64,000 nt of DNA, taken from the NCBI RefSeq assembly GCF_902459465.1, contig NC_047081.1:1240001-1304000 (forward strand), given 5' to 3'. Numbering within the stretch: position 1 is the first letter of the stretch; every line of letters starts with the position of its first letter. The translations under genes were made by a program, and so were the position numbers. Shown in pieces: positions 180-52,823 of the stretch. The stretch comes from Asterias rubens. Its lineage: Eukaryota. The notes beneath the pieces are model-generated. The model worked only from the letters and a program-made list of their open reading frames with translations. It was not told the DNA's origin and made no database searches.

Positions 180-278
180 GTTGGCTGTCTCATTAGGGTC
201 AGCACCTTTGGTCAGCAGGAGATTAATGATGGCTACATGACCCTGCTGGGAGGCTTGATGAAGAGGAGTCAGTCCATG
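180..278 (-). CDS. Ank: Ank exon, repeat 23 ([33 protein letters not shown])
   Basis: 99 nt; acceptor ttgcag, donor GTGAGT. Confidence 0.95.
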
Positions 279-6200: not shown

Positions 6201-9200
6201 GTTGTGTTTTGTTTTTGTTTTGTTTTTGGTTTTACTGCGCCTTGAACACCCAGCAGGGTGGATATGTGCGCATTACAAGTCTTATTATTATTATTTCATT
6301 TTATCACAGCATGCAACATTTCTCAAAAACTACACAACCTTAGTTAGTAATATTTGAAGGGAAGCTTTCCACTATCATTATCTTCAAACCCTGTAAGTTT
6401 AATGTAAATCTGTGGACATTTTAAAAAAGTACCCGAATCCCTTAACTTACCCTAGTCTTGGCATCGATTCTAGCTCCTCGATCAAGCAGGGTGTTGACCA
6501 TGTTGACGCGGCCCCACTTAGCAGCGACATGCAATGGCGTGATGTTATTTCTGGCTGCATGGTCAACCGACGCGCCCCTTTGCAGGAGAAGGGTGGCTAC
6601 GTTGACGTGACCGTAGTGGGCTGCGATGTGGAGAGGGGTGAATCCACTCTGTGGGGGGGGGGGGATGGTGATAGCAAACAGGGTGAGAATCATTGCCGAC
6701 AAGAAAATCTGACTCTAGGATGACAATTTTAGGAGTGGGCCACGAAATAACCAACGGCACCTACAGCAATTGCCCTGTGCTTTTGCTGTGGTGCCCTTTG
6801 CAAAGTTCCAATACAATTTTACATTTTCCTTAAAGAATGTGCCCCTCACCAGAGGAAAATTGCTGCGCTGCATCAAGAAACGATTCAAGCGCTGTGAAAT
6901 TGGGCCTAAGTTGAACCAAGGTATTCATGCCACCGTGTGCTTGAGGCAGTGCATCATTGTTTCTTCTCTCCACACAGTACAACCCCAAAATAAAGACCCA
7001 ACAAAGCCAATTTGATATTGTGTTTGATAAGCCTCGTAAGTGCTGTCGATCCGAAAAGCGTCCTCACCCAAAGGGGCTGAGAAAATAAACGGATTGTTGG
7101 CCAAACGTATAGGGGGAAAGAATAACACTGTGAGCCTCATTGGGGAATATATGCCCAGTGCGCTTAAGTATTCTAAATCCCTTTAAATCCTTCTACACCA
7201 TTAAAAAGAGGAAACAAACGAAGAACACAGGCCTGTCTATGTGATGTTAGCTTTCTATGCTTTGATTGGTCTGGCGTGATGTAGTTTGTTAGCTTGCATT
7301 CTCGATTAGGAAATGCTTACCTTTGATGTGATGTCTGGGTTATGTCCGCTCTGCAGCAGCAGCAGGGCGGCTTTGGTGTCGTCGCGGCGAGAGCAGATGT
7401 GCAGGGCGGGTAGACGGGTCTTCCCTGCCCGATCATTCTCCAGCAAGACTGCGACGACCTTGTCATGTCCTTGTTGTAGAGCAACTGCGAGGGGCGTGTA
7501 GCCATCCTACAAGTGCCAAAAACATACCCCAAGAGACAAAAAGTTAGATACGACTCTGGTAATATTGTAATTCATCTTCAGATTTATTTTCAGGGCTCGA
7601 ACTTATCACTGGACAACAGGCCTGTAGCCTGAAGCCATCCTTAAATGTCAAACACATACGCACACAAAAATAAAAAGTCCTGATTTCACCTCAAAAGATT
7701 TGCTGGTATTTTTTACGATGTTAGAGCTTGCACAGAATTAATTGTAAGACACCATTAACCTCACACGTTTAAAGGGGAGGTTTTTTTCAGATGCAAAGGC
7801 AGCAAATTTGCAATCTAAGCAGTCTGCTGCCACCTAGAGTCTCAAAATCTACAGGATTCTCATTAAATTTCTTTTACATCCTAAGGCGTAACAACATTTC
7901 CATTATGAGCAAAAAGGAGTCTATGTCTGAATTCAGATAGGAGTTTTTTGGTTTCCCAATAGAAACACATAATTAAACCCTAAAGCATTATTTTCCTGTT
8001 GTTGATGTTTTCCATTTGCTGTTGTAGCAAGAACAAAACAAATTGAAGTAAATCAAGAAGCGGATTATTAAGTTATAATCAGAGGTACCCTCAAATAGAG
8101 ATGTACATTTAAAATCTGACAATTGATACGGTTAACAAACACATCAACACGGATTAAGGAAAATAAATGTCTAGTAGATATATACAAGCATGCAGGTACA
8201 TGTACATGTAGGAAAATGGCTTTGAAACAGTACTGGCAGTTTTGAATGATATTCAAATTATACTCTGAATTAACAAAAACAAATTGAAGAGAAATTAATC
8301 AGAACTTGTGGGAACATTTAATAAAACAACATTATTTTTATCGGTTTTTGTTTTGTTTTGCTATTCCGATATCAGGGAGAATAGGCCACATACAAAAAAA
8401 GAGATAAAAACAAACAAATTCATTAAACAAATTATGTGTGAAACGCTTGCAGACTTTTATTAAAACTTGTTATTGACACATTGCATTCAGGTCTCACTTG
8501 CAGGCAAGAGAATGACTTTAAAAAATATCAAACACAAAAACAATATTAGTGATCTGAAATATGTTCCCCCAAAGAATACCTTAGGTTTTAGGAATCAATT
8601 TTTAAAATAGTTTAGTGTAGATAGAAAAGGTTCCATGTGCACAGAATTTTTTTATTTTAATTTTGCCTTGTTTTTTTCCCAAGAAGTTAATTTTGAAAAA
8701 ATGAATTACCTTTTAAATGTTTGTAACTATTATCTCATGTCAGATTTTAGCAAGTGTCTAACTGGTCTAACTATAGATTTTTAATAATTTATTTTAGGAG
8801 CATGCATTTTTTCAAAATCTCTTTCCTTTATTAGTCATTTTTCATAACCTATGATAAAGACAGAACATAAAGCCAACACCAACTACACAACAAAATAAAT
8901 GATCTCAAGGTCATCAAAAATAAACAGACCAAAAAACAAAAACATAATTTTCAAGGTCACAAAAAACAGTAATTCATTGTTCAATTTTAAATGAAGAAAC
9001 AAGAGAAAAAACAAATCCCTTTTTTCCTCAAAATGAATAAATATATTGAAAATTAAAATTACGTACATGTACAAGTTGGTTTTTACCTGTAGTGGAAACG
9101 CTTTTGCAACCGGATTTCACCTTTAAAAATAATCAGTTTACAATCTGCCAAAACTTAAAGAGGCTTGCGTGTAGTGTTTAATATTTCCCTCTCAAAAGAA

Positions 9201-12200
9201 AAACCATACTAAAAAAATTTTCTGAAACTTTAAAATCTCCCTTTAAGCCAGAAGAACTTAAACCCATCCAAGTTTGATTTTGTTTGGAGTGAGAAAAGAT
9301 TTTCAACTTCCACGCAATCCTCAAAAAAGTGTGTACACAAATTTGTATAAAGGTGAAACAATTTCATTCACTGCAGTAACACACAACAAATTGCCTAATT
9401 TTTTACTACTTGCTCTAAGAAAGTTTGAAAAAACATCACTGACGTTTTTTGAAATGACTAAAGACGCAGAGGGCTTCGAGAAAAGACATACATGTATAAG
9501 AACATTGAAGAGACACAAACAAACAATCATCCAACAAACAAACAAACTAACAGTGACCTCAAAAAGAGCTTTTAATTCAGGCAATCTTACGATTGGACAA
9601 AAGTGCTAGAACAACCATTAACGACGGTAACCAAATTTCTGAAAAAAATTCTAGGAAAATTTTGCTCATGAGGTTCTGGTCATGACCAAATCTCAAATTT
9701 GGTAGCATATTGGAACCAGGGACAGATTTCAATTTTGATCTGAAGCAACTATTGTTGTTGTTGTTGTTGTTATTATGTTCTTCAATTTAAAGAACTGCAA
9801 CCTCAATTTTGATGACATTTGATGACATTTGACCAGAATTTCTTCGCTCAAAAGTATTCTCTTACTTATATTTTTAAAACAACAAAAGAGCGATTAGTAC
9901 TTGTTTTTCCACAAAATCGGAACGCCATGACATTTTGGAAGTTTTTAATTCCAACAACAAACTTTCAAAAGCGACACAGTTGTTCTAAATAGTGCAATCT
10001 ACATTATTAAGGAAAGCAGAATTATGCGAATGGCTTTTTTTCCATCATGCTCTGTAAAAACAAGCGTACTTTCATTACTAAAGGTTAGGTTGGCCAGATC
10101 TCTTAAAATAGGAAGTTAAAAAAAAGGGCAGTTACTTGAAAGGCAAAATTTATTCCCCGGTTTAAAAAAAAAAAAAAACTGTAGGTTTGAAATATAATTA
10201 TAAACATTAGATTTTGGTGTTAAATAAATACCGCAAGGCACTTGTGAACATACGCAATGGGGTAAAGTACTTTTGGGGGAAATTTTTAGAAGTTCAAATT
10301 TAACTCTTTGTTTGTTTTGAGGCATTGCATTGTGATGTATCAATGTGTATTCGGTTTGCGGTTATGCCATGTTTGTACTACTGTGCTTTGTAGATTGATG
10401 TTTTGGGGGAACTAGGTCTTGCCTTTTTTAATTCTACTGCCGCAGGGCAGATTTCAAAACTCAGAGCCAAGTATTCTCAGGAATTCCAAAATCTACTCAT
10501 TGGCAGTATAAAAAAGCAAGACCTAGCACCAAAAATCTACAAGCAAAGATGGTATAAACATGATTCTGCTGCAAACTGCTTACAACTCACATTAAAAAAA
10601 AGACACAGTTCAAATGTCGTTTGAGAAGAATTTGCTTTGAAAACCTTCAGAACACAAATTTGAACTTCAGTTTCATGAATTACAAAACATAATTTTTGCA
10701 TTTTTGTTGTTGCATAATTTCAGACCTGATCTCAAAGATGAACCTAATTATTCAGATACAAATGTACAGCGCATATTTATGTTATTGCTGTGCCCGAAGT
10801 GCTGATTTTAACAAAAGTCTTCTCCACTTAATGATTTGTTTACCCTTTGGCTTTGGTGATAGGAAAATATTTCTCAAGATTGCCTGTTTCATTCTTTGTG
10901 ATTCTTATAATTTTCTCAAGATTTTATTTTGATTATTATTATAATTAGTATTTCCTTCTTTTGTTCTTTCTTTGTTTTTGTTGGGGGGGGGGGGGTGTTT
11001 CCTGACAGCAGGTAGTATATCATTTGAACAAATCTTGCAGTCATACATTATGCATTAACAGACCACGAGCAAAATTTGATGCAAAAGATTATGTTCGTTA
11101 AAAAGTCATCTAAAACGGCCAGTACTGTTACCATGGCAACCACATCTGACTTTCAAAACACACACACAAGAAAACATCATTCACTGCTACTGTTTTTGTT
11201 AATAGTACACGCTACAGTGTAATGTGAAAGACAACAAAGTCACGCCAGAGGAAGAAAAAAAGAAAAAAATACACATGAATTTTTGATCGGGGGATTAAAT
11301 TTATGGTTTGAGTGCTAACTCTTTTGTGTTTGGTGTCCTACCATGCAGATGAGGTGCTAGTTAACGATGGCGACCAATAAGCGTGCATATCTAGGCTAGG
11401 TCAAGTACATGCGACAAACTTGCGTGAGAAACAAAGCTGCTTGCAAAAGTCTCAGCCCCCCCCCTCTTATGGGTTGACCGTTAAAACAGTCATTTCTACC
11501 TTTCAGAGACCATTCATTTCTGTCTAATCACCACAAATTGCCCCCAGATTGCTACTATTGTTCATTTCTTTAATCAAATTTCTTTCATCAGTGTCAAAAG
11601 AAATAAATTGAAACAGAAAATTTAGTTTTATGTTTAAAGATTGGTATACTATTAAATAAACTAAATTGGAAAAACTTCATATCCGGATATGACCCTTACT
11701 TTGAACTCTTTATTATGCCCCAACCCCCAAAACAGCCCTGTGTTGCAGTCACTATGTGGACATTCCTTTGTGCTTTACACTTCAGAAAAATAACACTGTA
11801 AATAACAATGTGTGGACGTGTGTAAGTCTACATAGTGTTTAAAGTTCCTACACTATGTGGACTTCTTTTGCTCTAAAGACCATACTTAGTAGTGTTTAAA
11901 CACCCAGGCCGCCCCTCCCTCCAAATAATCATTAAGAAGTTAGACAGATTGAAGATGCGTTTTAGTGGGACAAAACAAGGGAGTACGGTGAGTGTCAGTC
12001 AAGTTATGCTTCAGAAAAGAGCTTTCTGGATTGGTGTTTAGAAGGGGAAAAAAGTAGAGAAGTCTTCAAGAGCACTGTACACACACAAAAATAACTTGAC
12101 AAACACTCCTCAAAAAATGTTTTACATGTACACCAATTATCTAGGGTCAGGATACACACACAAAAATAGTACACTATACACTGGTGATGTTTTGTTTGTT

Positions 12201-15200
12201 TTCTGTTTTCTACAATCATACACAAGAAGATTATAATATAAATGTACAATCGGAGCTCACGGTTGTCGTGACTTACGTACCTCCTGCTTCGGAGGGTACT
12301 TGGGCCGCGATTGGTGTTGCAAAAGCGTTTCCACGATTTTATAATGGCCCTGCTGGGTGGCGACCTCGAGCGGAACGAATCCGCCCTATGGGGTTTGGGA
12401 TGGGTGGTCGAAGGGGGTAGGTTGTGGTTAATGGTGCAGAGGAAGGGGGGACGGGTGGGTATGCAACGCCAAATGTTTAAACATAATTCATTTTGTTCCC
12501 ACAGCATGCGTGTATAAGAGAAAGACAAGACATTAATAAAGAGTGAAAGGGGAAAGGTATACATATAAACAAATGCAGGTCCAAAATACCACAATCAGAC
12601 GAAACTCGGTGTTGATGAAAAGTTTGAAAATGATATTTTGTCGCAAATTATCCAAAGTTTTTGAAAAAAAGTAACAAATCAAGTTAGCACGTTTTTTGTT
12701 TTCAATCAACTTGTCTCCTCAAACTTGAGGATTGGAATTATCAAAACATTTAATATTAATTTTTAGCAAACAATATACAGTTTAAAAATTATTTTGTTTA
12801 AATTAGAAGATTTTCAGGCACCAAAAGCTTGTTAAAACATATCATTTTTTCAATCTGGAATTAAATTCACAGCAATCTTACCACCCTCAAGTAATAATCC
12901 ACACTGGGTAAAAGTTTAAATAGTTTTGGGATTAATGTTTAGGAACTCTACCACCTGAGCTATCTAGCCCTTTGTGGGCGGTCCCCTATTGTGTCTAAAT
13001 CTTTGTTCAGGGGGTGCCAGTCAGAAGCTGATCTTAGCCTCCTAAATTGTATGCCCCAATCTCCACATAAACGGACAAATATTGCTACTGTTTTGACTGA
13101 TTTTAAAGAAAACTTGTTTTATGTGTACTTGAACTTGCCAACTGGGGCCAATTTCATAGAGCTTCTTCAGCACAAAAACCAGCTAAGCGCAAACCAACTT
13201 TGCTTAGCCGAGAGGGGTTACCAGCCAAAGCACCATGTTATGTACATAGTTTGTGCCTGGTACCCTGCTTATTTGTGCTTAGCAGACATTTTGTGAATCA
13301 GAAATTCTATGAAGTTGGACCAAGATAATTGGGTCCAAGTCACAAAGGGGTTGAAATCTTTATGGGGTTTTGTTCGGGAGGTGGGGAAGGTTAGAGGTGT
13401 TAAGACGTTCTTACCTCCGTCGCAAGGTTCTGGTTGGCGTTATTGTTCAGTAGATATTTGACGACCTCCTCATGGTTCTCCTGGGCGGCCATGTACAGCG
13501 GAGTGAAGCCGCTCTGCGGTTATGAAAAACGGTGAGTTTTAAGTGAGAAACAATCACCGCGAACATCCAGTTGTGACGTCAGAATTTGCTTGGCATCATT
13601 GAACTTTAAAAGTAAAGTCTGTCCCGAGCCAAAATGGCTCATCAGGCCGGTGAATACATAAGATTTCATTGGTATTTAACGACTGAGGACATTTCTATAG
13701 ACCGTATTGAATAACCACTTTTTGCTATAAAAGTCGCCATCTTGTAGGGCAAACTATATGCGCGTCCAAACGCGTACATCATCGAAGCACGCAGTACGCA
13801 ACATTCCCGGTTTATTTCTACAGCACATGCACGCGCGCACACACGCACGCACATGCGCACAGACACCATCTTGTAGGTCAGATATTTGAACAGTGACATC
13901 ATATTCAATACAGTCTATTCCCCCTGGACAGGATGCCAGTCCATCGTAAGTTACTACCCAGCTCTCGCTGCTCTAAAACACAAACGAGAAAACTACATGT
14001 ATCGTAAGAGGAAATCTAGATAGTATTTTAAAAACAAACGGCAAAAACAGCACACCGCATCCCAAACACTGCACAAACAAAACTAGACAATGTAAAAAGG
14101 TAGATACAAAAATGAAAGCTTACCACGGATTTCCGTATTTATTCCCCCTCACAATTCAATAACTAAATGCCGTTTGGAAATATATTATTCTACCCTGTCC
14201 ACAGTTATTATTTGTTAAAACTAACTCATTAGCATAGGGAGCTTTCCCCTTGACATTAGAATAAAATATAACCCGATTATTTCATTATAAGTTTATGATC
14301 TCCTATTAATTAAACATTAACTTGCTGATTTATTATTTCCAAGTTAAAGTTAGTTGACGCTTTACCAAAACATTAGTTACCATCAAGTTCAACTACCACC
14401 TTTGAACCCTCGTACTGTTTACGTTCTAAAATTCCCCCATTAGCATTTTGTAAACTACTTTTGTTACTACTCTCAGAAAAAGGAAAAAAACAGTGCAGAA
14501 TCTAATACATGTTTTAGTTGTTGCAGTACCAGCAACTAAAATATAGAATTTGAACTGCCTCTAGTTACCACGCAATCTAAGTGGTCTAGTGTTATGAAGT
14601 CCCACAATGTAATTCCTAGCCAGTGCCCATTTTCATACAGTTGCTTAGGCATAACAAGTAGCTAAGCAAAACAAAATCATGTTAAGCAGAATAAGGTTAC
14701 CAGCCAAAATACCATGTCACATGTACAACTTGTGACTGGTACCCTGATCCTTTTTGCTTAGCAGGAAATTGTTGAGCAATCTCTGCTAAAAGCAGCACCA
14801 TAAAATTGGACCCTGGTCTTTGCTCTGACTATCTTTGCGAGCAAAATAATTATTTCTTCTAAACTACTTCTACTAGCTGCAGTCCTTTACAGAGCAATGA
14901 CAATGACTCTGTTGAAAAATAATTAGTAAATTACCGCCTAGTTTCGTAAACTCAAGATTGTACACCTCTATGCTAATCAGCGGTTCCTTTCTTCAAATAA
15001 CATCTCAAGTCACATTTATTTTAGGTCGAATAGGATGTACAACTTTGCCCAAGTCAAGACAAGTCACAATATGAATGTTTGAAGAAAATAATAACAAGTT
15101 AAAAGATTATGATTATTTTTTATTTTTTTCTCCTTTTATTTTGTTTCCTCCCCCCCTTTTTTTTTTTTTGGGGGGGTTCAGTACAAGGCAAGTCAAAGGT

Positions 15201-18200
15201 CAAATTTGTCCATGCAATGTCAGAGGTCATTATTTTACCTGATTTATACCTTAGTAAAGTAATGCTGTAGACTATTCAGTTAATCTTCAAGATACCAATT
15301 GATAGTTTGAGCATAATTATGTTCTCATTAATATTCAAATTAATCCCAGATACTACTTAAAACCACTTCAGCTCCGCTCAGTGTCTTGTCACTTCAGAAG
15401 GCAAAAAAGTTGGCAATGAGGTGAAAAAGCTTGTGATAGGCTGCTTTATGATTGGTGCAAAATGAAAAACAGAGGCTCTGATTGGTTGTCGGCTGATGAG
15501 TGGCTCGACCAATCCGCTTGGCTTACCTGTACACCTGGCTGCTTTTGTTTGTTGTTGCGAATCTAAGAGTGTCAAAATCAAGGTTGTGTTTTTTGGTTTC
15601 CAATATTTAAAGACTCTTAATGCGTTTAGATGGCAGCAGACATAATCAGATACTAGACGATTTCGCAAACACTACAAATGCGTAGGTTAGCTATTGAATG
15701 AAGTGCAGACAGGTCTAACAAGAAACCAAAACTTGTAATATGTGCACTTTCCCAGTATTTGCGAAATTATGTACCCACGATATCTACTGCCACCGTGCAT
15801 CCCAAAGTTTCCCACTGTTACACACTCAAAAACTTGTCTAAGCCATTTCCATTCAGAGTTCATCAAATCCTTGGTGTTTCGACGTTTGCCGTGAAATGTT
15901 GCTCGTCCAAAGCAGATGAAAGTTGTAAAAATTATTACCACAAGCAGAAGAATTTGATTAAAAAAAATATGAAAAAATCATCTGAAGATTATCAAAGAAA
16001 TTGCTGTAGTATGAATCAGGCGAGATATTTGGTCAAAGGAAAAAAGTAGATTTTTTTTTATCTAGTACAAGGGCTGACCTGGGGTCGATTTCACAAAGAG
16101 TTAGGACTCATCTTATCGCAAGTTAGGCGAGTAACTCGTCTTAACTTGGGATTTATCTTAAAGTCTGCATGCTACAGTGCAGGGTTGGGACTCGTCCTAA
16201 GTCCGAAGATTAGTCTTAAGTTAGGAAGAGTTTTGTGAAATCACAACAGCACACGCAAAGGCTGTGATACACTTTTCAAGTCTTACATGTATTTAACCAA
16301 AAAGCAGAATACGGACTAAAGCAGGAAGAATATCATGGCCCATGAATAGCTGCATGTCTGGAGTAAATATGCACATTTTTAACTCTCAAATGCTTTAAAG
16401 CATTTCAGCAGAGTATCAATTCCCCTTTACTGAAGCCCCACCCACCCCTTTTCATAGTACCGTCGCATTCAAGAACTCTATTTACCTAGAGTAGGATATA
16501 AGGGTAAAAACATAGAATACGAATGAAGAAAAGAATTCAACGAAGAGTTACCTGAGACTGAACATTGACGTTGGCGCCATGGTCCACTAGGGCCTTCACA
16601 ATTGGCTGTTGACCGGCCAATGAGGCGATGTGCAGGGCGGTGTTCCCTTTCTGAAATGGCGAAAGAAACGTACATGTACTTGAAAGAGCCAGTAAGAGCA
16701 ATTTTAATAAATAGGCCCTACATCACTGTAAGGCCACTTTACAGAAGTGTTACTTGACAAAAGCAGTGGCGTTCCATGGCACGAGTGGTTCAGAGCATCG
16801 AACTCAAGCTCTGGGGTTTCTGATCAGCAGAGTGTGGGATATTCAGCCCTCTGTCCCATGTGCTAGGATTGGTAGTGCTTGTCAAAGTACCCAGAACATT
16901 CATTCAAGGGAATACATAGTGCTAGTCAGAGAAGTGTCTGTGTGTCTTTCAAAAACCCTTTTAAAAAATTTGGACACACAGTTTTTCAATTTCCAGCAAA
17001 ATTTTGACACCCTTTACCAAATCCCGGCTAATAATGTGTTCTTTTCTAAACGGAATCTCTCCTCAAAATAAAGCATGCCCCAGACTAACCCCCAAACAAA
17101 TTCCAATGCATTATTCCCCAGCCAGTTGACCTTTCGATAACACGATCTTCATCAACAAAGTCTAAGTACCACAAGTGTATCCAAAATAATGTTCTTTAGG
17201 GACCAGCAATCCACGTGGCTGTGACTATCCTCTTAGAAGGATATTGTCTTTAAATCAGAATGGTTTAAATAAACAACATAAAAACTGAGTCTGTGTTCAT
17301 AGTGGATTTGTGCGTACATCTAATAAAGACAGAGGTTGTTTTGAACCTCCTCCCCTCATCAACTCAATATCGAGGGGGCATGTCGGTTTTATTATTACCC
17401 CGGTTGTTCCTACTGATGGAAACGACACCATCTTGCCCCCCGAAGGGAAGTCGCGGGGGCTTAGTCCGAGTTGGTGCACGCTTAGCTAATCAAACACGAC
17501 CACCTCCGTAAGCCCCTATGGGTTCCGACTGAATGAACTCACCCGAGAGGGGGAACAGCAATTATTGAAATTGCGTCTGGGTCTGGGGACCCGTGATCTG
17601 AACACCCTGTCTGGTGGCGGGCTCGGAAAGAGAAAAAAGGTGAGACGTCTTGAGACGTTATGAGCTGAATGCAGGATTGCTCTCAGCTGCTGCTTTGTAT
17701 GTTCTTTTTTGCGGTTTTTGTTTTCTTCAATAGAAGGAAAGTTCGTGAGATTTTGCTAGACATGCATTAAATTTCGGTGGCCTAAAACTGTTTTTTTTTT
17801 TTCGTTTTTTTTCTTCCCGTTCTTATTTTTTTCTTGAAAACACAAACAGTTTTAAAGGATGTTTGAAGCAGGCATGGTGTAGAAAATAAAGAGTAACTGT
17901 ATGATTTTTTATCAGTTAAATTTGGGTTGAAAAAAGGGAAGTTTGACTAGATCGGGATTTGAACCAACAACCTCCGGACTAACATTAGGCGCTCTCCCAA
18001 CTAAGCTATCTAGCCCCAATGTTAGCGGTTTGCCTATTTTGTCAATATCTTTGTTTGGGGGTTCCAGGTAGAAGGCACACAGCCTGATAGCCCCAGATCC
18101 AGTTAATTCAGAAGGCATTGGTTGAAATCCAGCTCTACATGTAGTTAAGTGTTCTTTGTTCAACCCCAAATTATCTTTGGTATGATTATTTTTAGTATAA

Positions 18201-19601
18201 TATTTTACCTTGGTGGCGGCGTCAACATTAGCTCCTCTCTTCAATAATTCCTTGACGATGTTCAGGTGTCCTTCTTTGGAGCTCAGATGAAGAGCATTCA
18301 AACCATTCTAAAAGACACAAGAGAAGTGAACATTTTGATTAATTAAATAAGTATTTATTAAAAAGGCAAATTGCATCGAATGATTATATTCTGCAACAAT
18401 GCATGATCGAAATGTATCAATGCAGTCAACAAATCATACACCTTCCATAGACCATGTAGACTGGTCAATAGACCGATACACTAAGCTCCGCCCCATTGCG
18501 TATTGACCAATCACAACACAACGAAGGTCCAACAAATAAGGTCCGACATGCGTGCGCGTATCTTGGCGCGCGCGGCAGAGTTGTGCAGAAAGGCATTGGA
18601 AAGCCCCACGTGTTCTTGCTCACACGTGCGTCGTGGGCAGAGCCTACTGGATCGGTCTATTGTTTAGACTGCAGGACTTGCACTCACAAAGTTGTGGGTT
18701 TGAATCCTACTAAGTATTGCCGTCTAGCTACTGAGTCACGATTTATTGATTAGTGCAATATCATAATCATAGATGTTAAAAACAATGTTAGTATGAGAAA
18801 GAATTGTTGTTGCCAGCCTGGTGCATATCCCCATTGTGAGAGTTTGCAGAGTTCCCTTGGTGGGAAGATCATCTAAACAAAAAAACAAACAAACAAACAA
18901 TTCTGAACCTTGCAGAAGAGCTTGATACATTTAAACTTCCGACTGACAGCATGTCTCATTGTGTTCTTCTTAATTTAAAGCCTGTCTTTTTGGTCCTTCC
19001 ACAACCCAAGTCGCCCTCGGCAAACCCTGGTCGTAAGGGGGTCCAAATCACTACTAACAGCCATTTGAGGGGCCAATCATCAGAATCACCTGCTGTAATA
19101 AGCATCTTAAATTATGCAAGGGCCCTCCGAGCAAACTGATAAGACTTGTCAAAGAAAACGCCGGGAAGTTAGGTAGAATCTCTTGAAAAAATTTATCATG
19201 AAAGGATGTTAAGAATTTTCTGGAATGTTCGAACACATGGAAGGTTACAGCTTGCACAAATGAATACATTTAATATCTTCAAAGCTCTTTTTTGTGTGTG
19301 TTTTCCCGTTTTTTCCCCATTTTTTTTTTGGTTTGTAAATTTATTGTAAGAATCATTGGTGATAACCATTGGCCAATTTCATCACGCTAATTTGAAGAAC
19401 AACAATATTCTGCTAAGCAGGAATTGATCACCAGCAAAAATGTGTATAAAGCGAATACCTGATTCTAAACATGCTAATAAGTATTCGGCCTGAGCAGATT
19501 TCTTGTTTATGTTATAATGTTTCTTTGTTGTGTTTTTTTTTTTTTTTTTCTTAGCCTTCGAGAAAGATTCTGCTAGGATCAAAACTATTTTTTAATACCA
19601 T

Positions 19602-19642
<41 letters not shown>

Positions 19643-22600
19643 AGGAAGGTCCACCACCATCCAGATTTAAGTGACTAATCAATGCCTATTCTTTTTTACC
19701 TTGATCAGTTGTCCTTCCATAGCCAGCGTTTTGCAATTGTGGTACTCCACAATCAATACTCGTTAGTGGTAACCAGTCCTAAACGATCGCAGATCTACGT
19801 GTACTACAAACATGTCAGCCAAACACAATTTTTTAACTGGCTGTGAGACAGACTGTGTATAATACACACACCTTAGCTGTACTGAAGAATGTAACCCTGA
19901 AACCCTGAAGATTTAAGACATGTACACAACTGTACATGTACCTGTATAAATCCATCTGAACTTACAGACATGTCGTCCATGTACAAAATTTAAAGTGACT
20001 GTGAAACAGACTGAGTAGACATACACACCTTAGCTAAATGTATACCCTGTCTCCTGTCTCACTAAAGATTTATGACAAGCACACAATTGTACCTGTATAA
20101 ATCAATCTGAAATTAATGTGATGTAACGTGTCATTGACCTGTGTTGGGAGTGGGGGGGGGGGGGTCTCTAAAGTTTCATTTCATGTCAATAAATGGGTCA
20201 GCTTCAAGTAAACAAGGAATTGGCGCTTACAGATGCGGGGAATTTCACTGGTTAGAAAATAATTCTTGCTTGCCCGTGCGAACTCCACTTTACTAGGCAT
20301 TCTTTGTTCACATAGCTAACGCAGAAATTCTGTATTTAATCTAGCATACCCGTACACGTATGACCAAGGAGTGAAATTGACCAATGGGACGACATTCCAC
20401 AGTTCCTAAAGTCAGCTCAGGCATGTTGTTATATGCCAGCCAAACAACCACATCTTGCACGCTTTGTCGATTAGACAATTTAGTGCACAGCAGTCAAACG
20501 AAGATGGACATCGATCACGTGATGATAGTGGAGGCAAGAATAAACCAACTAGATTTAATTTCTCTTTGGCCCTTTATACCTTCTGCTTGACCATGGAAGG
20601 TATAATCCAATCAGATTGCTTGTCTGATAAGTAAGCGTGCATGGCTAACGTCACAAAGCCGCTATTGCTTATCTACCGACCAATCTGATTGGTCGTGACA
20701 CGATCGACAGGTAAGTTGTCGGGACTTATAGCCGGGGAGCCGAAAACACTTGAATTTTCAAGCGATCAAGTAATTTCAAATCTAAATCATAATCCAGTGT
20801 GGTAAGTTTAGCTTCATGCGAGACTTGAGCAAGTGAAAGAATGTGAGGAGTTCTTGCAAGGACTATCAGCTTGTCTGTTCACGGTGATTTGGAAAATGTA
20901 AAGTGCATTGAAATTATAATTATTGATGATACAAATGAACTGGTTATTGTCCATAAGGCAGTATTACATTTAGTTATGTAATACACTATCACAATTTGTA
21001 AACAACTTATAAATGTTCTGAAAACCGCCTCATAATTTTCATGCTAGAGTTAGAAGTAAGGGTTACGGATTAAGAACAAGAAAATATATACTAGGAGTGT
21101 CGGAACATAGGTGGATCGGAACATTGGAAGCATAATGGACAGAATAGAAGGTGCAAGAAGGGAGAAAAAGTAATATCAAAATTTGCAACAAATATTATAA
21201 AAACTTGATGTATATCCACCTCATCGTAGCACCCATCAATCAGACCTCTCATCAGACACTGGAATATCTCATCCAGAATCTGTTTTTGGCGCTTATTGAA
21301 GTCTGCGTCCAAGCGGAACTTGTTCGGTACCTCCACGGTCATCTTCCCGAGAAGTTTCAGCTCGCGCATTATCTCCATAGTGCTGGCCATTTTTAAAAAC
21401 TCTTATGTTGCGGATTAATTTCCTTGAGTGGTGTCCCCGTGAGTTTCAGAGTTTGCTGTAAGGGCGTCGCTGAATTCCAACTTCCAAGTTATTCCAAGGA
21501 GTCTCTTAACAGAGATATAATGTACGTGTTGTTGATAAAAACAATCCTTCTTTGATATTTTCTGAAGTTCCAAGCTCTGAAAGGCTCTCTTTCCCAATCT
21601 TTAATGTTCTTGTAGTTGATTAAAAATCCTACTTTGATGGTCCTTTTAAAAACTTATCACAGAAAGAAGCTTCCTTCTACAGGTTTGTAGACCGAAAGAA
21701 GTCAACACTTGCAAATGATATTTTCCATGAAAATAAAGAAATGTTTGGTATCTCTGATTGTTTTTTTTTTTTTTCCCAGGACAAATCTTAAAATCTCACT
21801 TTCCGGGAACAGGCTGGTTCGTAAGTGTTTGGCACACACACAAGTCGAGTATCAAAATATATTTGCATCCTATATATACAGGTAATATTGGAGTTTTTTT
21901 CCCGATGTTTGACATCCAATTAGAGAAGGTACAAGTTGCCGTGGCAACCCGTAATAAGGCACAATGTTAGCGAGTTACGGCGTTAGTTGCAATCGAGTCC
22001 GAGTCTGTGTTTCTTCTGATGACATCAGTGTCTGTAAATCTTCCCGGCTGAGTTCCAACTCGCCGAAAAAATGGACGGCGTGCAATTTGTAGAATGTTGA
22101 ACACCTCTATGAGAAAAAGTGCAGGGTGAATCCTCAACAAACAAGTGTTGTTGTTCAGTTCAAAGCAGTCCACACGTGTATTGTTTGCCGCTTGATTCAG
22201 GATTAACTGTAGTCGAGCAAACACGAAGCCTAGACCACACTGATGAATTTTAATCACCGCCTCAAATCAGAAGTGTTAACGACAGTGATACATTTGATCG
22301 AGACTCTAATAAAAAATGAGAGGGGGGGGGGGGTACAGAAAGAAATGATATTTCCTGTGCGTGAATTGTGTCTCAACACGCTCTGCTGACAATAATCCAG
22401 ATGGATTGATCATTCGTTCCGACGTGAATGTTGAAGGGGGAAGCATCAATTCATGAGACGAAGTGTGCTTCTAACCTTATAAAACACATTGAATGCTGAA
22501 CCAGTCGGTCCGTCATGTATTCACATCGTCTTTGTCCCCCTACAGTTTGCATAGGAGATTTTTACGAGAACTTTCTTCGAAGGCCACCCTTTGGAAGGTA

Positions 22601-28600: not shown

Positions 28601-31600
28601 ATGTGTACTTACCGCATTACTGGTGTTGATGTCTGTGCTGCCCTTCAAGTAGTCCAAGACCTTCTCTAGGTTGCCAGCTCTTGCTGCTCTTAAGAAGCTG
28701 GCATTACCATCTGATTGCTGCAGAAACAAATGGCAATAAAACACACTCAATTAGCTCAAGGATTTCAGGCTGTGTCAAGCTCGGTTTATACTGAATGCAA
28801 ATGCGAAGTGAGTTTCATCGCCACATGGCTGTTTTTGCAGCAAATGTTTTGCAGGAATTGAACACGGTTCCAAGTTTTGTTTTCCAGATGTGTGACATCA
28901 ACATTCATATCGCATTCGCATTTGCAGGATAAATGAACCAGGCTTCGCCCTTTCGTTACTGAGTTCTTTTGGACGCAAACAACCACTAGTGCAGGGCTTG
29001 AACTTTACACTGGACAGGAGGACCAAGGCTAATGATTTTACTGTCAGGCCAGTAACCCTGTGATTCACAGATTCAAATTTTGGTGAATAAAACCTCAATA
29101 CTTCGAAGTGAAATTAAAGGCAGTGGACACTATTGGTAATTATTCAAAATAATTATTAGCATAAAACCTTTCTTGGTGACGAGTAATGGGGAGAGGTTGA
29201 TGGTATAAAACATTGAGAGAAACGGCTCCCCCTGAAGTGCCATAGTTTTCGAGAAAAAAGTAATTTTCCACGAATTTGATTTCGAGACCTCAGGTTTAGA
29301 ACTTGAGGTCTCGAAATCAACCATCTAAATGCACACAACTTCGTGTGACAGGGGTGTTTTTTCTTTCATTATTATCTCGCAAATTCGATGACCGATTGAG
29401 CTCAAATTTTCACAGGTTTGTTATTTTATGCATATGTTGAGATACACCAACTGTGAAGGCTAGTCTTTGACAATTACCAATAGTGTCCACTGCCTTTAAC
29501 TAAAAATGATTTATAGTACTATCAAAAGCTGCCAAATGTGTTTATGGTAATTCATTTTAAGGGTGATTACCAAACGTATACAGACCCTTTATAGATTTAT
29601 TTCGGACCCTGTCACTGCATCCTAAATGGCCCTTGAAATGGTCCCTTGGAGTATTATATTTTCTAATTGAGGTGACCTTACCACCAAGGGTAACAAGCTT
29701 TGCCACTTACCAAAATGTCAGGGGTGTCATTGAGATAAACAGAAGGCGGGGCCTGGGTCTCCCCTTGGACCCCGTTTACACTAGATCAAGAAAGATCTAG
29801 ATCAATTTTGGCAATGTGGATTAACTGCTAGTGTCAAAATTGCCGGTTCAAGATATGCCAATTTTAATCTCCCTCTCGAGGAGGGTTGAATCAGGCAACT
29901 TGTAGATCAGATCCAGTAAAGTGGATTCGAAATACAAGTGTAAACGCAAAGTTGGCGCTGCTCAAAACCAATTTTGTTATTTTTTAAACCCGTACAAAGT
30001 ATGTATTTTGAACAAAAACCCGTACTAAGTGTGGGAAAAACGTACTAGTTGGCATGTCTGCAAAGGTGGATCAGCCACACCAATTCGATGTGGTCATTTC
30101 CGGTTTCGCTACAAATGGTGCGCATATTTTTGTTTTGCGCGTGTCTAGTCTGTTCTGAGAGCCACTTACCACTGATGTCTGTGCCTCGTCCGGTGACGGA
30201 GTGTTGTCTGCCATAAGTTTCTCTGGTTTCTCCGGCTTGGCCGGCGGAGCCCCGTCAGCATTTTCCTTCTGTAGAAATAAGAAGAGGAGAACGTTTTACA
30301 AGAAGCACCTTAAAGCACATGAATGGGTAGCGTTGGTATTTGCTAAAGACCAGTATCCACACTGTATGTGTTACCAAACATATACAGGAAACCACCAACC
30401 TGTGAAAGTTTTAGCTCAATTGGTCATTGAAGTCACAAGAAATAAGTGGGGGAAAAAACCTTTAAAAATATTTTCACACACGATGAAGACTTTTATTTTA
30501 ATAGACTTTTTATGCTATGCTATGAATCATAATTTTTCAGATTTTTCCAAGGGCAAAAAAAAAATCCTGAATCAGACAAAAGTAGGAAGAAAATCATGGC
30601 ATCCATCTGAATAATTCAAAGCATAACTTATACACTTTGCCTGCAAGAACAGGTGAACAGGTTTCTTGCAGTCTCCCACCATTAACCATTTATTCCATAA
30701 TGATGAATATTGCAATTACCTTCCATGCACTTCTCCTAAAAATTTCATCACAAAATAAAAAGACCGTAATTGTCCTTTGATGCCTTTGAGCAATTTCCAG
30801 GTGTCAATTCTGACAACATAATGTTTTACGCAATACATCTCTTTAAAAAAAAAAATCAACTTTTCTTTCTGTGAAGCCGGCAGCAACAAATTGACTATCT
30901 ATGACAGCGCCAGTGTCATTTTCCTGAAGGAAAGACACCTGGATTTTGACAAAGAAACTTCGTTTTGTGAAGCTGTGATCGATCGATAGTTCAAGAGGTC
31001 CTTTGCGGATGGGTTTCATAGACAAGAACAGATTTATTGTGTGGATGTGTGGTTAACTGAATTTTGATTAAACATCAAAATAAAAGAAAAAAAGAAAACT
31101 GAATCGGTAAATTTTAAATGGTTGAACAAAGACAATTCGAGTGGGAGTTGTACCAACAATCTGTTATTGCTCCTGCATATTTTTTGTTTAGCAGAAAATT
31201 TCTAAGCAATATTTACTACTTAAAGCAGGTAATATTGGGCACTGATTCTAGATGAACTTTCCAAAATAGTGGCCTAGATCTGTGACGGCTAAAAAATAAA
31301 TAAAAAACCAAAACATGGAGAGCCCTAACATTGCAATTGACTATTGAAGAATTGATGTAGTTTGAAGCATCAGCATGACTGTGAAGTTTGAATGGGTCAT
31401 TATTTTATTATTCAGCTGCAAGAACCTAACCGTGGCTTTGTGTTTTACCAAAAACCTGACCGTTACAAATCATCCATAAAGTGACAAGCACCTAGGAGCC
31501 TGGGCGTTTTAGGTGCGTTTTTTTTTATATATTTTTTTTTTAAAGATAATTTCGTAGATCTACGGATAAAGGTACAAGCTACAGTACAGAATTTGAATAG

Positions 31601-52600: not shown

Positions 52601-52823
52601 AATCCCCTGGTCTGAGCTCCACAACCCCCTTCAAATAACTAACATGAATCTAAGTATGTTTTTGTTAATAGACCCTCCCCTTATCAAGATAATTTACCGT
52701 TAAAGGTTTCTCATCTTGTAGAAAATACTTTTTGGTATACAAATCATGAAATTAATTTACCTTTCGGATGCTTGCCACATCAAAGTCAAAATCCTCCTCA
52801 GCAACAAGGGGTGAGGTACTCAT
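180..52823 (-). CDS. Ank: Canonical ankyrin gene (ANK1/2/3, unc-44 family), spliced CDS, 5' part: N-terminus plus ankyrin repeats 1-23; continues beyond position 1
   Basis: 18 exons with GT-AG ends, all phase 0, joining into ~811 codons without a stop. Diagnostic motifs [16 protein letters not shown], GxTPLHxAA repeats and LAVALQQGH match the ankyrin membrane-binding domain. Confidence 0.97.
674..973. mobile_element. MITE, family X copy 1
   Basis: Imperfect TIRs (aatgcgccgtattttt.../...aaaaatatggcccatt); similar copy at 37002-37299. Confidence 0.75.
1095..1292 (-). CDS. Ank: Ank exon, repeats 21-22 ([14 protein letters not shown]...AGIQEKTK)
   Basis: 198 nt; acceptor atgcag, donor GTATGC. 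Confidence 0.96.
1690..1887 (-). CDS. Ank: Ank exon, repeats 19-20 ([14 protein letters not shown]...KPDIAAK)
   Basis: 198 nt; acceptor atgcag, donor GTACAA. Confidence 0.96.
2348..2446 (-). CDS. Ank: Ank exon, repeat 18 ([33 protein letters not shown])
   Basis: 99 nt; acceptor ttacag, donor GTACGT. Confidence 0.96.
2837..2935 (-). CDS. Ank: Ank exon, repeat 17 ([33 protein letters not shown])
   Basis: 99 nt; acceptor ctacag, donor GTAAGT; not shown in the ORF track. Confidence 0.95.
3474..3770 (-). CDS. Ank: Ank exon, repeats 14-16 ([14 protein letters not shown]...SLSMQTK)
   Basis: 297 nt; acceptor ctctag, donor GTACGA. Confidence 0.96.
4136..4234 (-). CDS. Ank: Ank exon, repeat 13 ([33 protein letters not shown])
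   Basis: 99 nt; acceptor ctttag, donor GTAAGC. Confidence 0.95.
4629..4727 (-). CDS. Ank: Ank exon, repeat 12 ([33 protein letters not shown])
   Basis: 99 nt; acceptor cttcag, donor GTACGT. Confidence 0.96.
5178..5375 (-). CDS. Ank: Ank exon, repeats 10-11 ([14 protein letters not shown]...NPSARAL)
   Basis: 198 nt; acceptor ttacag, donor GTGAGT. Confidence 0.96.
5525..5623 (-). CDS. Ank: Ank exon, repeat 9 ([33 protein letters not shown])
   Basis: 99 nt; acceptor ttgtag, donor GTACAC. Confidence 0.95.
5821..6295 (+). mobile_element. 5'-truncated L2/CR1-group LINE 3' end
   Basis: ORF tail [20 protein letters not shown]...[14 protein letters not shown]...FKSLLKTYL is typical of the C-terminus of L2-clade ORF2; ends in a (TTA)n tail. 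Confidence 0.88.
6451..6648 (-). CDS. Ank: Ank exon, repeats 7-8 ([14 protein letters not shown]...RIDAKTR)
   Basis: 198 nt; acceptor ccacag, donor GTAAGT. Confidence 0.96.
7068..7076 (-). CDS. Ank: Candidate 9-nt alternative microexon (PLW) between repeats 6 and 7
   Basis: Minus strand tttattttctcAG|CCCCTTTGG|GTGAGG; in frame, 49-nt AG-free zone upstream. Confidence 0.5.
7321..7506 (-). CDS. Ank: Ank exon, repeats 5-6 ([14 protein letters not shown]...NPDITSK)
   Basis: 186 nt; acceptor ttgtag, donor GTAAGC. Confidence 0.96.
11127..11140. promoter_or_regulatory. RFX X-box motif GTTACCATGGCAAC
   Basis: Fits X-box consensus GTNRCC-N2-RGYAAC exactly. Confidence 0.45.
12281..12385 (-). CDS. 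Ank: Candidate alternative exon encoding a duplicate of ankyrin repeat 5 ([35 protein letters not shown])
   Basis: 105 nt, phase 0-0, acceptor cccatAG, donor GAG|GTACGT; 13 of first 22 residues identical to repeat 5; GC-rich codons in an AT-rich intron. Confidence 0.78.
13415..13513 (-). CDS. Ank: Ank exon, repeat 4 ([33 protein letters not shown])
   Basis: 99 nt; acceptor ccgcag, donor GTAAGA. Confidence 0.96.
13696..13919. mobile_element. MITE with ATAGACCGTATTGAATA-type TIRs
   Basis: Inverted termini; internal direct repeat ccatcttgtagg. Confidence 0.65.
15451..15513. promoter_or_regulatory. Cluster of three CCAAT boxes
   Basis: ATTGG at 15451 and 15481, CCAAT at 15509. Confidence 0.35.
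15527..15562 (-). CDS. Ank: Candidate 36-nt cassette exon ([12 protein letters not shown]) between repeats 3 and 4
   Basis: Acceptor ttttgacactcttAG, donor CAG|GTAAGC, in frame, no stop. Confidence 0.33.
16552..16650 (-). CDS. Ank: Ank exon, repeat 3 ([33 protein letters not shown])
   Basis: 99 nt; acceptor tttcag, donor GTAACT. Confidence 0.96.
16765..16880 (+). mobile_element. tRNA-derived SINE, family A
   Basis: Degenerate A/B-box head (catggcacgagtggtt...ctgatcagcagagtgtggg); related copies at 5694, 28399, 33737, 48821. Confidence 0.65.
17543..17621 (-). other. Candidate frame-breaking (poison) exon between repeats 2 and 3
   Basis: Branch-like CTCAC + tract ccttttttctctttccgAG, donor GG|GTGAGT; 79 nt (68 nt if next CAG is used), both give premature stops. 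Confidence 0.38.
17912..18062 (-). mobile_element. tRNA-derived SINE, family B (GGGCTAGATAGCT... head)
   Basis: tRNA-like A/B boxes, not a clean cloverleaf; related partial copies at ~1364-1437, ~12945-13030, ~60421-60486. Confidence 0.6.
18209..18307 (-). CDS. Ank: Ank exon, repeat 2 ([33 protein letters not shown])
   Basis: 99 nt; acceptor ttttag, donor GTAAAA. Confidence 0.96.
18467..18661 (+). mobile_element. ~195-bp MITE with AATAGACC/GGTCTATT termini
   Basis: Short TIRs; near-complete inverted copy at 49664-49858. Confidence 0.8.
21220..21390 (-). CDS. Ank: Candidate alternative first coding exon (57 aa, [12 protein letters not shown]...[20 protein letters not shown])
   Basis: aaaaATGG start context; GC-rich third positions that end abruptly at a phase-0 GAG|GTGGAT donor (weak); joins repeat 2 in frame. 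Confidence 0.55.
21935..21948. promoter_or_regulatory. RFX X-box motif GTTGCCGTGGCAAC
   Basis: Fits X-box consensus; ~545 nt upstream of the ATG at 21390 on the minus strand. Confidence 0.45.
23109..23175 (-). promoter_or_regulatory. Putative internal promoter (Inr-like TCAGT plus CCAAT ~60 nt upstream)
   Basis: Minus-strand TCAGT at 23113-23109, CCAAT at 23175-23171, (CA)n at 23327-23349. Confidence 0.3.
23327..23349. repeat. (CA)n microsatellite
   Basis: Direct observation. Confidence 0.95.
28399..28473 (-). mobile_element. tRNA-derived SINE, family A head
   Basis: Reverse complement of GTCATGGCC...GGTTCGAGT. Confidence 0.65.
28613..28717 (-). CDS. Ank: Ank exon, repeat 1 ([35 protein letters not shown])
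   Basis: 105 nt; acceptor tttctgcag, donor GTAAGT. Confidence 0.96.
29118..29495. mobile_element. TTAA-flanked MITE (Kolobok-like AGG...CCT termini)
   Basis: 24-bp TIR AGGCAGTGGACACTATTGGTAATT, TTAA on both sides. Confidence 0.88.
29773..29946. mobile_element. Small MITE with CGTTTACACT/AGTGTAAACG-type termini
   Basis: Short inverted termini only. Confidence 0.5.
30170..30268 (-). CDS. Ank: Ank N-terminal linker exon ([33 protein letters not shown])
   Basis: 99 nt, phase 0-0; acceptor tttctacag, donor GTAAGT; P/E/K-rich. Confidence 0.8.
32624..32992. mobile_element. TTAA-flanked MITE, same family as 29118
   Basis: Same TIR and internal sequence, TTAA flanks. Confidence 0.88.
33737..33826 (-). 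mobile_element. tRNA-derived SINE, family A head
   Basis: Reverse complement of GTGTCATGGCC...GGGTTCGGATCCC. Confidence 0.65.
35080..35250. repeat. Diverged ~95-bp tandem duplication
   Basis: acattcacacaaatcaaaggccaa...tcagagaaa occurs twice. Confidence 0.7.
35898..36259. mobile_element. TTAA-flanked MITE, related subfamily (AGGGAAGGTATAC terminus)
   Basis: TIR-like ends, TTAA flanks, internal similarity to 29118 and 32624. Confidence 0.82.
37002..37299. mobile_element. MITE, family X copy 2
   Basis: Same internal sequence and termini as 674-973. Confidence 0.75.
37672..37860. repeat. Degenerate ~21-bp minisatellite (gccccttcctctaaccgg-like)
   Basis: Repeated units visible; gives the APSSNR repeats of ORF 37551-37808. 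Confidence 0.7.
42575..43047. mobile_element. Degraded TTAA-flanked MITE
   Basis: AGG.../...CCCT termini with TTAA; internal similarity to 46797 and 62351 copies. Confidence 0.55.
45018..45382. mobile_element. TTAA-flanked MITE (AGCCATTGGAC termini)
   Basis: TIR AGCCATTGGAC.../...GTCCAATGGCT, TTAA flanks. Confidence 0.8.
46797..47160. mobile_element. Degraded TTAA-flanked MITE
   Basis: Left end TTAA-AGGGAAGGTATG; shares the cagattgtgtattcctagta block with 49461. Confidence 0.5.
48821..48911 (-). mobile_element. tRNA-derived SINE, family A head
   Basis: Reverse complement of GTGTCATGGCC...GGGTTCGAATCCC. Confidence 0.65.
49461..49532. repeat. 32-bp tandem duplication
   Basis: cagattgtgtattcctagtaggggttattctt x2 plus partial third unit. 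Confidence 0.9.
49664..49858 (-). mobile_element. Inverted copy of the 18467-18661 MITE
   Basis: Reverse-complement match along its length. Confidence 0.8.
50051..50380. mobile_element. Foldback-like element with ~29-bp TIRs and internal sub-repeats
   Basis: CGTCGTGTGCCCGGCAAAAGG.../...CCTTTTGCCGGGCACACGACG; AAGT on both flanks; 40-bp perfect palindrome at 50060-50099. Confidence 0.8.
51007..51075. repeat. 23-bp tandem repeat x3
   Basis: caaaacatttaagatgaaaaaaa x3. Confidence 0.9.
52761..52823 (-). CDS. Ank: Ank first coding exon, coding part ([21 protein letters not shown])
   Basis: ATG in agaATGA context, 21 codons, donor AAG|GTAAAT in phase 0; ends in basic residues just before the SDxNAS exon, as in other ankyrins. 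Confidence 0.72.

Follow-up and report, generated by a model that had tools for sequence, protein, structure and literature searches.

To our knowledge, the 24-repeat count of canonical ankyrins has been treated as fixed across bilaterians, and Wang et al. are said to have found in 2014 that the inner groove of repeats 1-14 binds sodium channels, L1-family adhesion molecules and exchangers. The present work concerns a stretch of 64,000 nucleotides (nt) from the sea star Asterias rubens (contig NC_047081.1, positions 1,240,001 to 1,304,000), referred to below as the window and numbered from its first letter. This region is filled by the 5' half of the sea star's single canonical ankyrin gene, and the elements under study are a cassette exon that lies between the exons for repeats 4 and 5 of that gene and an intronic element, kilobases (kb) away, that is perfectly complementary to part of it.

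The closest described genes are the ankyrins of vertebrates. In ANK1, ANK2 and ANK3, as in the gene in the window, the repeats are encoded by phase-0 exons of 99 and 198 nt, and repeats 5 and 6 are fused in a 186-nt exon, which in the mouse is exon 6 of Ank3 (PMC4449188). The vertebrate genes, as exemplified by mouse Ank3 (PMC4449188), also resemble the sea-star gene in having several alternative first exons and in carrying their largest introns among the first repeats. They differ from it in the way in which the repeats themselves are varied, since the study of Ank3 in mouse heart (PMC4449188) describes the skipping of repeat exons, whereas the sea-star gene adds a repeat.

Two kinds of sequence feature that bear on the control of such an exon have been described in other genes. 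An association has been reported between long AG-free zones and regulated exons (PMC1431707), and likewise between conserved long-range pairings and alternative splicing (PMC8052449, PMC2724269). The ingredients of the locus analyzed here, namely a cassette exon, a long-range pairing, an AG-free zone and alternative first exons, are thus all of known kinds, and the exon itself is already predicted by annotation pipelines. A literature search returned no published description of the exon, and the association of a conserved helix with a switch between 24 and 25 repeats appears to be unreported for ankyrins.

The extra-repeat exon and its conserved complement

The exon and its two coding neighbours are placed as follows.

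12281..12385, minus strand: cassette exon of 105 nt (35 codons) between repeats 4 and 5, identified from RNA contigs, conservation and protein models
13415..13513, minus strand: exon of ankyrin (ANK) repeat 4, identified by motif and profile scan, splice sites and comparison with Acanthaster
7321..7506, minus strand: constitutive 186-nt exon of ANK repeats 5 and 6, identified from splice sites, RNA and comparison with Acanthaster

The extra-repeat exon has an open frame and is bounded by ccccatag^ and ^gtacgtaagt, where the caret marks the exon boundary. It is present as a single copy in the 417.6-megabase (Mb) genome, and 46 of 93 nt are identical to the first half of the exon for repeats 5 and 6, which identifies it, by sequence similarity, as a diverged half-exon duplicate of repeat 5. 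Its expression was evaluated by mapping four RNA runs, which come from related organisms, on positions 6600-12599 of the window. One contig from run X14 covers 12387-12280 and extends at one loose end into the 3' end of the exon for repeat 4 and at the other into the 5' end of that for repeats 5 and 6; it therefore reads through repeat 4, the extra exon and repeats 5 and 6 with exact junctions. This is the splicing that had been predicted for a duplicated repeat 5 at 12385-12281 by the first-pass annotation, an earlier reading of the sequence made by a model. The 3' end of the repeat-4 exon is the loose end of skipping and inclusion contigs alike. In a contig from run X10 the extra exon runs on into the intron downstream, of which 43 nt or more are retained, and the depth of this contig is 3.7, compared to 197.7 for the skipping form in which repeat 4 is joined directly to repeats 5 and 6; the corresponding depths in run X14 are 4.7 for the exon-bearing contig and 82.6 for the main contig. 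These depths point to inclusion at a few per cent in these samples (about 2-5% of skipping depth). In addition, 31-mers of the exon occur in RNA-type runs of several organisms.

The exon is not confined to sea stars. An insert at the same place between repeats 4 and 5 is present in the NCBI models of Acanthaster planci (where the insert is 97% identical), Lytechinus pictus, L. variegatus, Diadema setosum, D. antillarum, Apostichopus japonicus and the crinoid Anneissia japonica, in which it takes a 45-residue version with a differing core (HVIVALLLE). The exon was therefore not hidden from annotation, as had been supposed: isoform models of five other echinoderm genera contain it. The insert is absent from the ankyrin models examined outside echinoderms, which number roughly 170 and come from vertebrates, arthropods and other groups; none of them has an extra whole repeat at this position, unlike the echinoderm gene. 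The exon is thus a genuine, anciently conserved, echinoderm-wide cassette exon, and its distribution from crinoids to sea stars gives it an age of more than 450 million years. In an AlphaFold model of the N-terminal repeats of the Apostichopus protein (mean predicted local distance difference test score, pLDDT, 88.7), the insert forms two helices stacked in the solenoid with pLDDT 81-91, followed by a low-confidence proline-rich loop at the hairpin position. Since the insert is modelled as a normal stacked helix pair, inclusion of the exon would add a 25th ANK repeat to the protein.

The nucleotide sequence of the exon is conserved beyond what its coding function leads one to expect from the rest of the gene. 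Between the window and Acanthaster, 98 of its 105 nt are identical (93%), compared to 79-89% in constitutive exons, and it contains a 50-nt stretch without any change. Synonymous change is suppressed: it affects 5 of 34 codons in the extra exon (15%) but 318 of the 698 amino-acid-conserved codons in the constitutive exons (46%; Fisher p = 3e-4). The unchanged stretch contains one arm of a predicted helix, the other arm of which lies far downstream in the same intron.

12316..12334, minus strand: exonic helix arm, coding for VETLLQ+1, with 19/19 complementarity to the intronic arm and located in the 50-nt stretch identical in Acanthaster
9092..9110, minus strand: intronic helix arm, a perfect complement of the exonic arm, 3.2 kb downstream of the exon in the same intron

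The reverse complementarity between 12334-12316 and 9110-9092 extends over 19 of 19 positions, with unpaired flanks, so that the antisense partner claimed for the duplicated repeat 5 in the first-pass annotation does exist. The 19-mer occurs at these two places only in the 417.6-Mb genome, even if one mismatch is allowed, and the energy of the 19-base-pair (bp) helix is -31.2 kcal/mol. A scan of the exon against 120-nt tiles of the intron with RNAduplex was uninformative, since all tiles gave energies of -35 to -59 kcal/mol by means of large interior loops, and ungapped pair counts were used in place of these energies. By that measure the maxima obtained from shuffled sequences are 15-17 of 19, even when G-U pairs are counted, compared to the 19 of 19 observed.

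The orthologous-locus comparison took in the locus of Acanthaster planci, reached through the longest of its isoforms (P0413), and one 6.5-kb contig from a third, distant echinoderm (L012). In Acanthaster both arms are identical to those in the window (L003:6319-6337 and 8934-8952), and the partner lies 2.6 kb downstream. From the exon for repeat 4 to that for repeats 7 and 8, alignment between the two sea-star sequences is limited to the four exons and the partner block, which is the sole conserved island in an otherwise unalignable intron; across the whole shared region there are just two collinear blocks outside exons, this one and the 36-nt microexon candidate described below. A scan of metagenome contigs with the 19-mer gave nine matches, eight of which have unrelated flanks and look like chance, while the ninth is L012 itself (JAAUXV010272793.1), echinoderm genomic DNA with an extra-repeat exon of the urchin or sea-cucumber type. 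The longest block that is invariant in L012 and both sea stars measures 22 nt and coincides with the exonic helix arm. The local fold of the partner region is no better than that of shuffled sequences (z 0.25), and a search of Rfam gave no match around the intronic partner. A snoRNA-like reading of the partner was dropped because C/D boxes are not suitably placed in either species. Taken on complementarity and conservation, the pairing is well supported within sea stars; beyond them, no partner stands above background in the 6.5 kb of L012. On the same grounds it is very likely that RNA structure is involved at the extra-repeat exon.

Three further features lie beside the exon and its partner.

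12388..12604, minus strand: AG-free, C/U-rich zone of 217 nt upstream of the extra-repeat exon, found by an AG-run scan of both strands
12505..12509, minus strand: GCAUG (Rbfox-type core) at -124 relative to the exon, in a conserved ACGCATGCT block
9083..9089, minus strand: conserved CAG^GTAA motif, 2-3 nt downstream of the intronic arm, found by alignment with Acanthaster

The AG-free zone (12604-12388), which had been noticed at the duplicated repeat 5 in the first-pass annotation, is confirmed as the longest on either strand of the window; the next longest measures 146 nt, and the zones of constitutive exons measure 24-88 nt. In the Acanthaster ortholog it extends over 197 nt, so that both sequences lie above the threshold of more than 100 nt for the AG-exclusion class. 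The GCAUG in the ACGCATGCT block is found at -124 in the window, at -140 in Acanthaster and some 30 nt before the exon in L012; as a candidate Rbfox-type element it is conserved in three species. At the intronic arm the motif UUUCCACUACAG^GUAAAA is conserved and resembles a recursive or decoy 5' splice site, and A(A/G)G^GTG is conserved upstream of the arm. Candidate branch points include TTAAC at -46 and others near the 5' end of the AG-free zone.

Proposed control of the exon and competing explanations

These observations may be accounted for by assuming that the extra-repeat exon is regulated at the level of RNA, through splicing control by the conserved long-range helix, and to this reading we assign a probability of roughly 0.55. 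Pairing of the exon core with the intronic element 3.2 kb downstream would loop out the 5' splice site and mask the core, and the acceptor sits behind a C/U-rich tract, free of AG for about 200 nt, that carries the conserved GCAUG. Helix and tract together would keep the exon skipped by default, and cell-specific factors would release it. We infer both the formation of the helix in vivo and its effect on splicing; the helix could either repress inclusion or promote it.

A more ambitious version of this reading can be put forward only tentatively, and we regard it as doubtful on balance. According to it, the perfectly conserved helix, which would have arisen no later than crown sea stars and might be pan-echinoderm, switches the membrane-binding solenoid between 24 and 25 repeats and is read together with the GCAUG and the motif resembling a 5' splice site; repeats 1-4 would be shifted by one repeat, and channel and adhesion partners would be re-tuned. 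An optional repeat between repeats 4 and 5 would shift the register of the first binding site, unlike the small vertebrate inserts, as a means of tuning the choice of partner. The unusually clean long-range helix, with 19 of 19 pairs retained in two lineages whose introns are unalignable, makes the exon a compact case for the way in which RNA structure may control splicing outside insects and mammals.

Several points weigh against splicing control by the helix. No partner above background is present in L012 within 4.06 kb downstream or 2.36 kb upstream of the exon, so the exonic core could be constrained for another reason. The pairing is deduced from complementarity and conservation rather than from compensatory change, since neither arm differs between the two sea stars and covariation is therefore absent. 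Given the TTAAC at -46, the branch point may be close to the acceptor in spite of the long AG-free zone. The estimate of a few per cent inclusion was derived from the depth of contigs in related organisms, a poor measure, and every one of the NCBI isoforms examined from other echinoderms includes the exon, which may therefore be the major form in those animals.

The comparative signature of adenosine-to-inosine (A-to-I) editing is the same as that expected for a splicing-control helix, and the exon-intron helix might accordingly be read as an ADAR substrate, in which the intronic 19-mer guides the recoding of the exon and any effect on splicing is secondary. A signature of this kind is seen at editing sites of the GluA2 and GluK2 type, and conserved editing sites in general reportedly carry it as their classical mark, a finding ascribed to Hoopengardner et al. 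in 2003. Synonymous change is suppressed in the exon stretch, a conserved intronic complement lies kilobases away, and the exonic arm holds five adenosines, of which those in the Glu, Thr and Gln codons of VETLLQ would be the candidates for recoding. Such a role is nevertheless unlikely, because site-selective ADAR substrates are usually longer and less perfect than these 19 bp, and because the GCAUG and the long stretch free of AG are suggestive of splicing control; nor is there any A>G difference (T>C on the plus strand) at the exon among the differences listed, a list outside which most of the differences fall.

The intronic element might instead serve mainly as a splice-site decoy or recursive site, with its pairing to the extra exon deciding whether it is used. 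The pyrimidine-rich arm and the CAG^GTAA (9089-9083) would then make up a zero-length or short frame-shifting pseudo-exon, an arrangement with which the conservation of both CAG^GTAA and the upstream A(A/G)G^GTG around the partner agrees, as do their spacing (34 nt in the window, 40 nt in the Acanthaster sequence, each of the form 3n+1) and the X10 contig in which at least 43 nt of downstream intron follow the exon. The motif is short, however, and indels between the species show the block to be non-coding. There is also no RNA coverage or junction at 9000-9200 in the four runs, and hence none at the motif, and an intron of just 4.8 kb does not need recursive splicing, so that this explanation, too, seems distinctly improbable.

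It can also be supposed that the complementarity has no function in RNA and goes back to a templated inverted insertion that was fixed in the asteroid ancestor and kept by chance or for a reason at the DNA level. The match has sharp boundaries with dissimilar flanks, and L012 has no partner above background within its contig, both of which speak for this explanation. It is very hard to reconcile with the saturation of neutral intron sequence between the two sea stars (the introns are unalignable, and synonymous change stands at 46%), since a neutral 19-mer would not stay identical under these circumstances, and the chance of an exact 19-mer in a 5-kb intron is about 2e-8.

A Dscam-like, structure-guided choice between duplicated repeat-5 exons, which the first-pass annotation had proposed as a means of combinatorial diversification of the binding groove, might seem natural for a repeat-5 duplicate (46/93 nt) with a conserved complementary element between the two copies, given that competing structures can arise by exon duplication (PMC6071210), but it can be given almost no credence, because one contig has the extra exon followed by repeats 5 and 6, so that the alternative is between inclusion and skipping rather than mutual exclusion; because all insert-bearing protein models keep repeat 5, which shares its exon with repeat 6, so that skipping of that exon would delete two repeats; and because the homologous part of repeat 5 has no complementarity to the partner, which leaves no docking and selector competition, and there is no second such pair above shuffled background.

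Gene layout and other alternative elements

The gene was delineated by scanning for ANK motifs and by means of a profile derived from the repeats of the window itself, which find one canonical ankyrin gene on the minus strand, with repeats 1-23 in order and repeat 24 lying beyond window position 1. In addition to the exons given above, its coding parts are as follows.

52761..52823, minus strand: putative first coding exon, read from the sequence, with ATG at 52823, 21 codons and donor gtaaat
28613..28717, minus strand: exon of ANK repeat 1, identified from the LRAARAGN motif and splice sites, with 85-94% identity to repeat 1 in echinoderms
18209..18307, minus strand: exon of ANK repeat 2, identified by motif and profile scan, splice sites and comparison with Acanthaster
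16552..16650, minus strand: exon of ANK repeat 3, identified in the same way as repeat 2
6648-6451, 5623-5525, 5375-5178, 4727-4629, 4234-4136 and 3770-3474, minus strand: first six constitutive exons of repeats 7-23 (within 180..6648)
2935-2837, 2446-2348, 1887-1690, 1292-1095 and 278-180, minus strand: remaining five constitutive exons of repeats 7-23

Repeats 1-23 are encoded by 16 exons with sizes that include 99, 186, 198 and 297 nt, all of them of the form ag^..^gt and in phase 0, with boundaries exactly between repeats, and the same is true in Acanthaster. The introns among repeats 1-7 measure 10.3, 1.6, 3.0, 5.9 and 0.67 kb, while each of those among repeats 7-23 is below 1 kb. The short introns in the latter part and the phase-0 junctions at repeat boundaries (16/16 exons) are as they had been described beforehand, and this layout of repeat exons and introns is ordinary for ankyrins. 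The nearest named ortholog is the ankyrin-2-like gene of Acanthaster planci, with repeats that are 91% identical. The part of the gene that encodes the ZU5, UPA and death domains is outside the window; orthologous proteins carry PF00791, PF17809 and PF00531. The product of the putative first exon shows only a loose likeness, in an acidic EED..K motif, to the N-termini of the Diadema and Apostichopus proteins.

The exon for repeats 5 and 6 (7321-7506), which adjoins the regulated exon, has the highest nucleotide conservation among the constitutive exons (89%, against 79-88% in the others), and the 40 nt upstream of it are also alignable with Acanthaster. The NCBI gene model on Acanthaster planci DF978489.1 (L003/L004) is split, with repeats 1-3 in a separate model of 144 residues, and all 25 Acanthaster ankyrin-2-like isoforms begin at a Met within repeat 4.

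The candidates for further alternative elements lie on the same strand.

21220..21390, minus strand: alternative 5' exon of 57 codons from an ATG, ending in a GT donor, which joins repeat 2 and so omits repeat 1
30170..30268, minus strand: further 99-nt phase-0 5' exon (KENADG..KPEKPEK..SPDE..), bounded by ag^ and ^gtaagt and found by tblastn
15527..15562, minus strand: candidate 36-nt phase-0 microexon of 12 codons at the junction of repeats 3 and 4, supported by conservation with Acanthaster
7068..7076, minus strand: candidate 9-nt microexon (Pro-Leu-Trp) from the first-pass annotation, unsupported

An alternative start that replaces repeat 1 had been suggested, and both the open reading frame with its GT donor at 21390-21220 and homology to Lytechinus bear the suggestion out. 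The last 33 residues are 48% identical (E 8e-9) to those just before repeat 2 in ankyrin-2-like isoforms of Lytechinus pictus and L. variegatus that lack repeat 1, and on this similarity the element is a conserved 5' exon of a repeat-1-less form. In Lytechinus its counterpart is preceded by further coding sequence, and the Acanthaster assembly has three N gaps in the region upstream of repeat 2 where this first exon would lie. The 99-nt exon at 30268-30170, missing from the list in the first-pass annotation, is homologous by tblastn to N-terminal exons of Diadema and Apostichopus and lies 1.4 kb upstream of the repeat-1 exon.

A candidate for the proposed 36-nt insert lies in frame at 15562-15527 and is probably a microexon, to judge from what is kept in Acanthaster: the acceptor cactcttag^, the donor (CAG^gtaag versus gtgag), the length and the open frame, with differences in the middle codons. 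It is absent from the protein models examined. A representative ankyrin, P0087, has a 25-residue insert at the same junction of repeats 3 and 4. The 9-nt microexon at 7076-7068 fared worse, being one of 27 mechanical ag..gt candidates in its intron, lacking conservation in Acanthaster, and being skipped by every one of the 20 junction reads and by one contig, in all of which 7321 is spliced straight to 6648. The claim that alternative elements cluster among repeats 1-7 therefore survives for three of them, while the 9-nt insert fails and the poison exon could not be located.

Small optional inserts inside the repeat domain are a property that the vertebrate ankyrins share with the gene in the window. 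Many vertebrate and arthropod models (P0037, P0041, P0052, P0096 and others) have an insert of 8-11 residues at the junction of repeats 6 and 7, of the type MMVNRTTE in vertebrates and GGLVNDTTK in arthropods. No insert at this junction was found in sea-star RNA or in echinoderm protein models, and no VN.TT homologue in the intron between repeats 6 and 7.

Two further kinds of signal were noticed in the introns. RNA reads pile up at 6771-6863, 10316-10351, 11732-11869 and 9527-9552 (X22, X23, X10), and almost all of them continue into unrelated sequence; they look like fragments of dispersed repeats expressed elsewhere and not like ankyrin exons. Positions 14615-14770 and 13146-13260 both match L003 31171-31329, non-collinearly and at 67-75%, and probably belong to a shared interspersed repeat family.

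Comparison with known systems of exon control

Among described mechanisms, the duplicated exons of Dscam1, 14-3-3zeta and srp (PMC4691838, PMC8042237) resemble the locus in that a conserved intronic element is complementary to the sequence of a variant exon. They are unlike it in that the exons here are not mutually exclusive, only a single pair without competition is present, and the pairing arm lies in the exon rather than in the upstream intron. The RNA-structure-guided exon choice envisaged by the first-pass annotation is contradicted by the same facts, both copies of repeat 5 being in the same mRNA with one complementary pair only; neither mutual exclusivity nor a docking or selector element at each variant was found.

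Sites edited by ADAR with the help of an intronic complement share with the locus an exon-intron duplex over kilobases and the suppression of synonymous change at the paired segment of the exon, while the duplex here, unlike that of usual ADAR substrates, is short and perfect. The class described by Gooding et al. 2006 (PMC1431707) is similar in having a conserved AG-free, pyrimidine- or C-rich zone of about 200 nt upstream of an alternative exon, and is dissimilar in that a good candidate branch point is available here just 46 nt upstream of the acceptor; the distant branch point that had been proposed for the exon is accordingly not borne out.

The locus also resembles the long-range structures described by Raker et al. 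2009 (PMC2724269) and Kalmykova et al. 2021 (PMC8052449) and in ATE1 (PMC7797038), in which, as here, conserved complementary boxes lie kilobases apart in one pre-mRNA. Ankyrin is not mentioned in any of these three papers. In this class, as in the sea-star gene, one arm is located at or in the regulated exon, and conservation stands out from a diverged intron; the boxes in the window are complementary beyond chance and are conserved in the intron of the ortholog. The locus is distinguished from the class by the nature of its helix, one arm of which is the coding core of the exon, and which is perfect over 19 of 19 positions and identical in two deeply diverged species.

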